Assembly: GCA_965112735.1 (NCBI GenBank)
Contig: OZ218961.1
Coordinates: 620,001 to 684,000, forward strand
Source of the DNA: Phaeosaccion multiseriatum
Lineage: Eukaryota; Protista; Ochrophyta, other classes
Length of the DNA stretch: 64,000 nt
Direction of reading: 5' to 3'
This document shows, piece after piece, positions 5,250 to 7,547 of this stretch. Under the pieces are notes generated by a model. It did not search any database. It saw only the letters and a list, made by a program, of their open reading frames with translations, and was not told the DNA's origin. The translations under genes were made by a program, and so were the position numbers. Position 1 is the first letter of the stretch. Each line of letters starts with the position of its first letter.

Positions 5250-7547
5250 TTACATAAGCGTACACGTGCACCCAGGAGCAGCAGCACGAGCCTCCGCAGC
5301 AACCATTGGTGGTCCGTCCTCAGGAACTGGTGCCAACTCTCGGTCATGGGCGGCGCTGCTGCTGTGGTTGTCACGCCGTCGAGCGCCACTGAGCGAAGAG
5401 TCCTTCCTATCGTCCTCCGGCACACTCACATTGGAAAGCTGCCTCGCTCTCTTGGTCTCGGAAGGCGAGTGACTAAATGCCCTCCCCTTGAGCCCCATCT
5501 CAGCGGGGCCCTGAAACGCTCGAAACACCCGCTCGAAGGAAGGGCGCTCCTTCGGGTCCCCACTCGCGCAGTCCACAAGTATGCTCCGTACACTCTCAAT
5601 GCCCCTCCAGCAAGGCGCGATGCCTCCGGAGGCATCTGTCATCAACCGAGCGTTACACGGATGGTCGAGAGGGCTGGTTTTGGTCTCCGCGGCCTGCACC
5701 ACATCGTGAAAGCCTGCTCCCTTCCAAACCTCTCGGCCGGAGAAGAGCGACATCATCACCAAGCCAAAGGAGTACGTGTCTACGGTAACGCCATAAGGCT
5801 CGTTAAGCAACACTTCCGGCGCCATGTACCGCGCGGTTCCCGTGGCGCCCGTCATTCTGTAAGCAGTGCCCTTTTCACTAGGCAGGTGCTTGGCCAAGCC
5901 AAAGTCTCCAATCTTGGCGTTGAGGTACGCGTCGACAAAGACATTGGAGGGTTTGAGGTCTCGGTGTATGATGGGCGGGGTGGCGCCGTGCAAGAAGCAA
6001 ATACCCTGTGCGATTTGCTCCGCGAGGGAGGCCTTGTCAATGCGACTCAAGCGCCTACAAGCCCGAGAAGCAGCACCATGAACACCCCCCACAGCGGCAG
6101 CAGGAGCAGCCGCACCACCTACCCCAGTAGCGAGAGCAGCAGCAGCAGTAGTAGTGACTCCTCCTTCGTCTTCGCTGTTCTCATCCATCAAGTCCTGTAA
6201 GGTACCTCCGCTCATCAACTCCATAATACACATGAGTCCGAGGTTAGGACAGTAAGACGCCCCCAGGAAGAGCACGATGCGGGGGTGGCGTAAGCTCGCC
6301 AAGAGCTCAATCTCCTTGGCGAGGTCGGACAAGGCTTCCTCGAGAGAGGCGTCTTGGTCTTCGCTCTCTTGCTGGGAGGAAGAGCTGTCACCATCGCCAC
6401 CACCACCACCTCCACCACCAACGCCGCGATCACCGCCGCCGCCGCCGTCGCCGCCAATGAAAGCCTTTCCAGACAAGCGTGAGAGCGTCTTGACGGCAAC
6501 TGGCAGCTGTCTCCACGTGCTCATGTACACACTGCCCATGCCCCCCTGGGCAAAGGGTTCGTTGGGCATGCCCGGCAAAATCTCTCCTGGGCTGAGGAGC
6601 CACCCCCCCTCCCTGCCCGAGTCTAGGAGCTGCTGCAGGCAGAGCTGCCCTCGGGTGAAGTCCCCCACGAGGCCTAACTGCAAGTCTTCGTCGACCACAG
6701 AGCTGATGGCTCGACAAAGCTCCTCTTCCACGTAGAGCATACGATTCATGCGCGAAGTGCACGCACGGAACCAGTCCAGCGCTCCCATGCCCAGACCGGC
6801 CGCGGAGCCCCCCTGAGCCACTATTGTTTTGACTCTGTGGCACTCTTCCGACTGCGATATGAAAGAATCGCATTGGGGCCGGAGTTGGCCAGAGATGAAG
6901 CCCGTGAAGGCCCGGGCCAGCCCATCCTGTCTGCTTATGAGGGACTTTACCTTGGCCACCACTTTGGGGTCGGTCTCCACTCTGCCTGCTGCCAGCGCGC
7001 CCCCTATCAGCGCCCTCTCCTGGCCGATGCTCTCCTTCAGGCGGAGGAAGCACACGTATCCATCAAACGGTTGCTGCTGCTTCTCATGCTTCTCCTCCTT
7101 CTCCGACTGCAGCTGTGACTGCTGCTGCTGCTGCTGCTGCTGGTGGTGCTCCTCCTTCTGCTTCTGCTGCCCCTTGAGCGCCCCCACGATGCTGCCTACC
7201 TTAGCTAAACAGACATTGAGCAGGCTTGTGTAGAAGTCACACGCCTCGTAGTAGCTCGCCTTGCCCCCGTCCATTATCTCCCTCTGCGCCTTGATCTTCT
7301 CCAGCGGTATAACGGCCTGCAGGAAGGCGCCGCTCCTGCCCGCCCATCTCGTCTCCGTGTACGCCCGCTGCGTGTCGAGCAGCTCCACACCAGTGCCCTG
7401 CCCGCTCCCCACATGGATCGAGGTGAGGCCCCTCTCCTTTTGGAGCTCGTGTATCGCGCCGCCCAGGCACATGAGCTGCGAGGCAGGCTCCCCATCCTTG
7501 ATGCTCCGGTCTTCCCTCATCCCCCCTTTATGCTCCCCATTCCTCAT
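5250..7547 (-). CDS. NIT (nitrate/nitrite-sensing) domain fused to a TKL/Raf-like protein kinase; single exon, 765 aa
   Basis: The N-terminal half has NIT-like motifs IHELQKERG..S....S, L.TQRAYTE, FLRLKESIGQERA and WFRACTSRMNRMLYVE. The C-terminal half has an intact kinase: GGMGSVY, VAVK, LRHPRIVLFLG, HRDLKPSN, DFG, GTARYMAPE, DTYSFG, P.ERPSF. Confidence 0.88.
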   Translation of the reverse strand: MRNGEHKGGMREDRSIKDGEPASQLMCLGGAIHELQKERGLTSIHVGSGQGTGVELLDTQRAYTETRWAGRSGAFLQAVIPLEKIKAQREIMDGGKASYYEACDFYTSLLNVCLAKVGSIVGALKGQQKQKEEHHQQQQQQQQSQLQSEKEEKHEKQQQPFDGYVCFLRLKESIGQERALIGGALAAGRVETDPKVVAKVKSLISRQDGLARAFTGFISGQLRPQCDSFISQSEECHRVKTIVAQGGSAAGLGMGALDWFRACTSRMNRMLYVEEELCRAISSVVDEDLQLGLVGDFTRGQLCLQQLLDSGREGGWLLSPGEILPGMPNEPFAQGGMGSVYMSTWRQLPVAVKTLSRLSGKAFIGGDGGGGGDRGVGGGGGGGGDGDSSSSQQESEDQDASLEEALSDLAKEIELLASLRHPRIVLFLGASYCPNLGLMCIMELMSGGTLQDLMDENSEDEGGVTTTAAAALATGVGGAAAPAAAVGGVHGAASRACRRLSRIDKASLAEQIAQGICFLHGATPPIIHRDLKPSNVFVDAYLNAKIGDFGLAKHLPSEKGTAYRMTGATGTARYMAPEVLLNEPYGVTVDTYSFGLVMMSLFSGREVWKGAGFHDVVQAAETKTSPLDHPCNARLMTDASGGIAPCWRGIESVRSILVDCASGDPKERPSFERVFRAFQGPAEMGLKGRAFSHSPSETKRARQLSNVSVPEDDRKDSSLSGARRRDNHSSSAAHDRELAPVPEDGPPMVAAEARAAAPGCTCTLM

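Follow-up and report, generated by a model that had tools for sequence, protein, structure and literature searches.

A divergent NIT-domain protein kinase gene in the alga Phaeosaccion multiseriatum and its candidate role in nitrate/nitrite sensing

In a 64,000-nucleotide stretch of the genome of the ochrophyte Phaeosaccion multiseriatum (assembly GCA_965112735.1, contig OZ218961.1, positions 620,001 to 684,000; hereafter the window, from whose first letter positions are counted), a minus-strand open reading frame (ORF) at 5250..7547 encodes a 765-residue protein in which a NIT domain stands ahead of a TKL protein kinase. The locus is almost certainly a genuine NIT-kinase gene. Sequence, structural model and analogy together suggest, with somewhat better than even confidence, that this is a nuclear gene of a eukaryotic alga whose product is a candidate one-component nitrate/nitrite-responsive kinase.

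Nitrate perception in marine phytoplankton is largely unexplained, and NIT genes are the sole proposal for algal nitrate sensing that was found in the literature searched. In plants, nitrate sensing involves NRT1.1 and NLP7. A nitrate/nitrite-binding fold coupled straight to a kinase, here through a sensor domain of ~280 residues, would be close to the simplest sensor conceivable, and biochemical proof on any NIT-kinase would supply oceanography with a molecular marker for the perception of nitrate. The idea was published in 2022, and the present locus is valuable as an extra test case, highly divergent, compact and with a single exon, and not as a discovery.

The open frame and its NIT domain

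The frame begins with an ATG, runs uninterrupted to a stop codon at 5250-5252 and is apparently a single exon, as judged from the ORF listing of the window, Pfam and a comparison with assembled contigs. An in-frame TGA six codons 5' of the ATG (7566-7568, minus strand; seen on inspection of the sequence) fixes the N-terminus, and further 5' exons have no room because of this stop and because a divergent ankyrin-repeat gene starts ~140 bp away. Contigs assembled from four runs of one sample match positions 4992-7106 and 7177-7770 with no substitutions, no indels and no joints, and they break solely at a CAG repeat (7107-7176). In three of the runs a single contig covers 4992-7106, and so crosses the junction between the NIT and kinase parts, without any difference from the window. 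Because independent contigs agree with it without change or joint, the ORF is not an assembly artefact. Where the initial annotation spoke of an intronless 765-residue ORF, the open frame of that length is therefore confirmed by contigs; its intronless character is read from the frame itself, and since all four runs behave as DNA we infer both this and the expression of the gene.

The same contigs bear on the idea of bacterial contamination, or of a chimera in which assembly placed a bacterial NIT domain next to an algal kinase, which might be suggested because the nearest NIT relatives come from bacteria without exception. With both domains crossed unchanged by a single contig in three of the runs, this explanation is effectively refuted and retains next to no probability. 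The kinase is moreover of the eukaryotic TKL type, the flanking genes (XPB exons and ankyrin repeats) are eukaryotic, the GC content of the gene is continuous with that of its surroundings (54-62% locally), and identity to bacterial proteins is only ~25-31%.

A Pfam scan of the whole protein identifies NIT (PF08376) with an E-value of 4.9e-24 and a score of 86.5 bits (cutoff 24.9). Scanned piecewise, residues 32-117 correspond to positions 3-104 and residues 164-277 to positions 123-234 of a profile 239 positions long, and either half scores above the gathering cutoff when scanned by itself. The initial annotation had recognised two NIT-type signatures, HELQKERG (33-40) with QR..TE (60-65) and KE..GQERA (171-179) with WF...T.R (259-266). 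The motifs are real, and because the pieces match consecutive parts of one profile they mark the pseudo-symmetric four-helix-bundle halves of a single NIT domain; two separate NIT domains were rejected on the same ground. The first half (residues 32-117; 7197..7454, minus strand as for all parts of the gene) carries HELQKERG and R39, encoded at 7431-7433. The second half (residues 164-277; 6717..7058) carries K171-E172, G175, E177-R178 (R178 encoded at 7014-7016) and W259. Between them lies a Q/E-rich, low-complexity insert of 46 residues (118-163; 7059..7196) that includes the CAG repeat and is modelled, at lower confidence, as a lengthened hairpin of helices 4 and 5.

An exhaustive phmmer search of 1.84 billion cluster representatives, with residues 1-300 as the query, returned 544 matches, the best of them 31% identical (E 3e-25). 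The ten top matches, when scanned, proved to be proteins of bacterial type in which two or three NIT domains follow one another in tandem, and eight of the ten also have a methyl-accepting chemotaxis signalling domain. Residues 16-300 were aligned with NIT segments taken from 70 homologues in this search (71 sequences in all), and in this alignment the ORF keeps all six invariant columns (R39, K171, E172, E177, R178 and W259) together with 27 of the 35 columns that are conserved at 80% or more across the 70 NIT domains. An AlphaFold2 model built from the alignment is all-helical, with a mean predicted local distance difference test score (pLDDT) of 89.6 and a predicted template-modelling score of 0.88. 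Its sole significant match to the Protein Data Bank (PDB) by Foldseek is NasR (4AKK; E 2.8e-5, probability 1.00, TMq 0.64), and VIA-align superposes model and NasR over 244 residues at a root-mean-square deviation of 2.9 Å (Z 26.1), the runner-up being a generic four-helix-bundle chemoreceptor domain at Z 12.7. The initial annotation had proposed to check its NIT call against the Pfam profile and by superposing a predicted structure on NasR, and both comparisons bear the call out.

In the phmmer alignment to NasR, R39 corresponds to NasR R50 and E177/R178 to NasR E175/R176, from which the nitrate pocket is predicted to be built (Goodson et al. 2020, PMC7496416). Two interface arginines have likewise been highlighted for animal NIT domains (PMC7400543). 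As modelled, then, the domain has a NasR-like NIT fold in which the putative pocket residues R39, E177 and R178 are retained. Because the pocket arginines are conserved, a nitrate/nitrite-sensing kinase is a fair hypothesis, and we lean towards the view that the protein does respond to nitrate or nitrite.

The gene might instead be real and its kinase active while the NIT domain binds some other small anion or metabolite, or merely dimerises or autoinhibits. Compared with any other NIT domain, the NIT part reaches no more than 20-31% identity; it departs from the consensus at eight of the 35 strongly conserved columns (among them K240 in place of Arg, L271 in place of Lys and Q50 in place of Gly), and the 46-residue Q/E-rich insert is unusual. 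Four-helix-bundle sensors also take many ligands, and the fold matches comprise receptors for citrate, malate, amino acids and aromatic acids. These departures must be set against the retention of all invariant residues, both pocket arginines and the KE...ER motif among them, and against the behaviour of other family members. According to the affinity table of one study, two bacterial chemoreceptors have NIT domains that in isolation bind both nitrate and nitrite with dissociation constants of 2-47 µM, and on that table the NIT domains tested to date are binders of these anions (PMC12358799); pelagophyte NIT genes, for their part, respond to nitrate (PMC9481584, PMC12054182). A ligand or role of this other kind deserves to be taken seriously but seems unlikely.

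Nitric-oxide (NO) sensing, which the initial annotation had offered in passing, is very improbable. It can draw on speculation about NO binding in the literature on animal NIT-guanylyl cyclases (PMC7400543), but nothing in the protein supports it: Pfam shows NIT and kinase only, with no haem-binding or H-NOX-like element, and the pocket is modelled as an arginine-lined anion site.

Kinase, termini and proposed signalling

The second folded part is a TKL/Raf-like Ser/Thr kinase domain (residues ~316-680; 5508..6602), found by Pfam as Pkinase (E 1.1e-36) and as PK_Tyr_Ser-Thr (E 5.4e-35). It holds all the catalytic motifs: AQGGMGSV at 333, VAVK (K353), the alpha-C glutamate E412, HRDLKPSN at 528, DFG at 548, APE at 576, DTYSFG at 590 and DPKERP at 664, the one variant being an Ala in place of the first Gly of the glycine loop, which is tolerated. 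The best PDB relatives are CTR1 (E 9.4e-28), PBL2 and RIPK3, and the best database matches include an EDR1-domain kinase. Because CTR1 is the best solved relative, assignment to the TKL (CTR1/Raf-like) group is supported; judged by its sequence the domain is a TKL kinase of the Raf/CTR1-like Ser/Thr type with intact catalytic motifs, in keeping with the catalytically complete TKL kinase of the initial annotation. The plant Raf-like mitogen-activated protein kinase kinase kinases (CTR1/EDR1/STY) are the closest relatives of this domain and share its HRDLKPSN and DxYSFG TKL signatures, with STY-like proteins also among the matches, whereas the regulatory regions at their N-termini are unrelated and lack a NIT domain. 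Two low-complexity inserts, one Gly-rich (361-400) and one Ala/Gly-rich (455-500), interrupt the kinase and are predicted to be disordered.

These inserts, with the one between the NIT halves, invite a different reading of the frame, in which the locus is not expressed as read, either because the gene is silent or decaying or because residues 118-163, 361-400 and 455-500 are encoded by in-frame introns and the protein is shorter. Knowledge of the gene comes from DNA, each of the three inserts is either predicted to be disordered or modelled at low confidence, and neighbouring genes do have introns, XPB being split over several ORFs. This reading is nonetheless hard to reconcile with a frame that stays open across 2.3 kb of ~59% GC DNA, with catalytic and family-invariant residues that are all intact, and with a CaaX-like box placed directly at the stop codon. 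The inserts occupy loops where kinases and helical sensors often tolerate insertions, and the recurrent intron-associated motif of this genome is absent from 5250-7547. On balance we hold either version of this reading to be improbable, and return to the protein as encoded by the full frame.

A linker of ~20 residues (~295-315; 6603..6665), of low confidence in the full-length model, leads from the last NIT helix to the N-lobe of the kinase. At the other end of the kinase, a disordered tail (residues 683-765; 5253..5501) ends in GCTCTLM. The CaaX rule for farnesylation calls for a Cys, a permissive a1 position, an aliphatic a2 and a final X. The terminal CTLM (5253-5264) is CaaX-like, with its Cys followed by Thr at the permissive a1, an aliphatic a2 and Met as X, and an extra Cys stands two residues upstream; a disordered tail of this kind resembles that of other lipid-anchored signalling proteins. 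No transmembrane helix was found in a simple hydropathy scan, made with no dedicated predictor, in which the top Kyte-Doolittle 19-mer (1.78) is the beta4-beta5 core of the kinase, and the N-terminus (MRNGEHKGGMREDRSIKDGE...) is acidic and charged, unlike a signal or transit peptide. A transmembrane receptor was accordingly rejected on the hydropathy scan. The initial annotation had described a soluble protein with neither signal peptide nor transmembrane helix; the absence of both is borne out by the scan and by the charged N-terminus, and the word soluble needs qualifying because the C-terminal CTLM is CaaX-like. By its sequence, the protein is taken to be cytosolic and possibly tethered to a membrane through a lipid at CTLM.

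There is reason to think that such a protein could couple anion binding to phosphorylation in a few steps. Nitrate and/or nitrite would bind between the two NIT bundles at R39/E177/R178, and binding would move the last NIT helix, which spans residues ~256-285 or, in some of the modelling, more. Movement of this helix would alter kinase activity, probably by relief of autoinhibition or by a change in dimerisation, and the kinase so altered would phosphorylate targets that adjust nitrogen acquisition. Signalling from NIT domain to kinase is proposed here by analogy with NasR, in which the NIT domain acts on an ANTAR output domain, keeping it autoinhibited until nitrate relieves the inhibition (PMC7496416). 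The disordered tail ending in CTLM would probably be farnesylated and would hold the protein at the cytosolic face of a membrane. The preferred ligand could be nitrate or nitrite, and the response could be activation or inhibition.

Relatives among known and predicted NIT proteins

NIT-kinases have already been described in marine algae. Guérin et al. (2022, PMC9481584) reported three NIT genes in Pelagomonas calceolata, two of which combine NIT with a protein kinase and one of which places its NIT domain between two transmembrane helices, and found 60 homologues confined to Pelagophyceae, Dictyochophyceae and one putative cryptophyte transcriptome. Among the kinase-type genes, one was up-regulated where the water was rich in nitrate (Tara metatranscriptomes), and the authors inferred intracellular sensing of nitrate/nitrite through phosphorylation (PMC9481584). 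A culture transcriptome study of 2025 repeats the description of the P. calceolata NIT-kinases and reports that the genes respond to nitrate supply (PMC12054182). Literature searches on NIT domains in phytoplankton and eukaryotes, and on their pairing with protein kinases, turned up no biochemical work on a NIT-kinase. The view in the initial annotation that no NIT-kinase had been characterised thus holds for biochemistry within the literature searched, and fails for the architecture, which has been described since 2022; the claim to novelty is weakened by these P. calceolata genes and their pelagophyte and dictyochophyte homologues. The present gene belongs to this known algal class, which is described in silico and by expression and is biochemically uncharacterised.

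Compared by published description, the P. calceolata, pelagophyte and dictyochophyte NIT-kinases share with the present protein an N-terminal NIT domain without transmembrane helices, a Ser/Thr/Tyr-type kinase, an origin in marine algae and a proposed role in intracellular nitrate/nitrite sensing via phosphorylation. They differ in that the expression data are theirs, and in that neither a Q/E insert nor a CaaX-like end is mentioned for them.

Sequence searches recovered no close relative. A word-index homology search with the NIT part gave five matches, all bacterial, and a search at full length gave only generic TKL kinases at 28-35% identity; an exact-sequence look-up of the protein found no match, and a scan of JGI metagenomes found four bacterial-like loci at 24-26% identity. 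Within the 64-kb window, tblastn matched only the ORF itself, with no second NIT domain and no paralogous kinase copy. In the ESM Atlas, which compares language-model features, the protein falls next to a eukaryotic cluster of 56 members (score 0.99; 235 of 256 features), with a representative of 738 residues, Pkinase in 100% and NIT in 84% of its members, those members that carry a taxon record being mostly Haptophyta. This cluster is a lead, and not an alignment, to the recurrence of the NIT and kinase architecture in eukaryotic plankton. The NIT part alone retrieved only bacterial NIT clusters from the Atlas, at scores below 0.9, and a shape search there with the full-length model retrieved only generic kinases. 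Because the best 150 NIT matches include no protein that joins NIT to a kinase, the gene is, by sequence, probably not a close orthologue of the P. calceolata NIT-kinases.

Among better-known systems, NasR of Klebsiella oxytoca (4AKK), a NIT-ANTAR antiterminator, shares the sensor fold, the pocket residues, a cytosolic one-component design and the order of NIT before a C-terminal output. It differs in that its output is the RNA-binding ANTAR domain, which Pfam did not find in the 765-residue protein, in place of a kinase; the two NIT domains are ~20% identical, and the Q/E-rich hairpin insert is present only in the alga. The bacterial NIT chemoreceptors, of which PscN of Pectobacterium atrosepticum and Dd15070 of Dickeya dadantii appear in the affinity table cited above (PMC12358799), are the nearest NIT relatives at 25-31% identity and are the proteins to which those nitrate/nitrite affinities belong; their NIT domains are periplasmic, flanked by transmembrane helices and coupled to a HAMP/MCP output, whereas the domain described here lies in the cytosol and is joined to a kinase. 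Among animals, the NIT-guanylyl cyclases of placozoans, molluscs and others likewise reuse a bacterial-type NIT domain with two conserved arginines in a eukaryotic protein, and are likewise uncharacterised, but they are membrane receptors whose NIT domain is extracellular and whose output is a cyclase (PMC7400543).

Several observations weigh against a nitrate/nitrite-responsive kinase as the best account of this gene. The runs that confirm the gene are all of the DNA type. The nearest NIT identity, 31%, is to bacterial chemoreceptors, no orthologue was retrieved in the protein searches, and a local phmmer search for the kinase domain found it in none of the 150 best of the 544 NIT matches. 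The fold-search matches contain no ligand-bound NIT structure, NasR 4AKK being the sole NIT entry among them, and the nitrate pocket of NasR is itself 'proposed' (PMC7496416). The full-length AlphaFold2 model, which was built from a block-diagonal alignment, leaves the packing of NIT against kinase open, with residues 289-346 below a pLDDT of 50. No ligand-binding or kinase data for eukaryotic NIT proteins were found in the literature searched, and the neighbouring genes (20 long ORFs scanned) are unrelated to nitrogen assimilation.

The lack of NIT-plus-kinase proteins among the best 150 matches, together with the haptophyte-labelled Atlas cluster, would be explained if the gene represented a second eukaryotic NIT-kinase lineage, separate or anciently split from the pelagophyte/dictyochophyte family. 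Its product would then be a farnesyl-tethered primary nitrate/nitrite receptor feeding a Raf-like cascade, held for example beside nitrate transporters or at a nitrate-storing vacuole. We consider this extended proposal quite unlikely; if true, it would provide the first direct anion-receptor kinase for phytoplankton nitrogen status.

Neighbouring genes and other features of the window

The divergent ankyrin-repeat gene next to the NIT-kinase gene lies on the plus strand (7686..8684, within an ORF at 7413-8684 recognised from the ORF listing and Pfam), with a likely ATG at ~7686, ~140 bp from that of the NIT-kinase. The two genes may share a promoter region, and the ankyrin gene is not part of the sensor. 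Five long ankyrin-repeat ORFs of similar size occur in the window on both strands (7413-8684, 31944-33002, 38212-39291, 56761-57885 and 58860-60119), and they look like a locally expanded gene family. Long purine/pyrimidine microsatellites at 4008-4582 and 8740-9327 flank the NIT-kinase/ankyrin pair.

On the other side, exons of XPB/ERCC3 occupy 2164-3813 on the plus strand, where two ORF pieces match consecutive parts (130-155 and 157-197) of the C-terminal helicase profile. This arrangement indicates an intron-containing XPB gene, the end of which lies ~1.4 kb away from where the NIT-kinase gene ends at its 3' side. A domain scan placed a 2OG-Fe(II) oxygenase gene at 9206-10411 on the plus strand.

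Farther away, a single minus-strand ORF of 1050 residues (51221-54373) joins a 2OG-Fe(II) prolyl-hydroxylase-type domain (~347-430) to a GlcNAc glycosyltransferase (PF11397; 552-860, E 1.9e-64), a pairing that presumably recalls the Skp1 hydroxylation/glycosylation pathway. The word-index homology search gave no match to this ORF at E<=1e-20, and the ESM Atlas contains a eukaryotic cluster of 50 members that shares this hydroxylase-GlcNAc glycosyltransferase fusion; for this ORF the Atlas gave Chlorophyta as the commonest taxon. Another minus-strand ORF, of 387 residues (34096-35259), consists of FNIP repeats (PF05725, E 3.3e-30).

Repeats are also prominent. A tandem array at 15519-16109 comprises ~28 copies of a 21-22-bp unit that contains CCATCCACTGCCAT, and the unit is dispersed as well, for example at 18201-18289, 21139-21329 and 27882-27988, with none within the NIT-kinase ORF. 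At up to two mismatches, CCATCCACTGCCAT matches the window at 61 sites where 0.73 would be expected, almost all of them on the minus strand. Finally, in the flanking microsatellites a GA-rich tract gives (ERE)n/(SL)n ORFs, and a CAT/ATG-type trinucleotide tract gives runs of ~30 His or Met residues depending on the strand.

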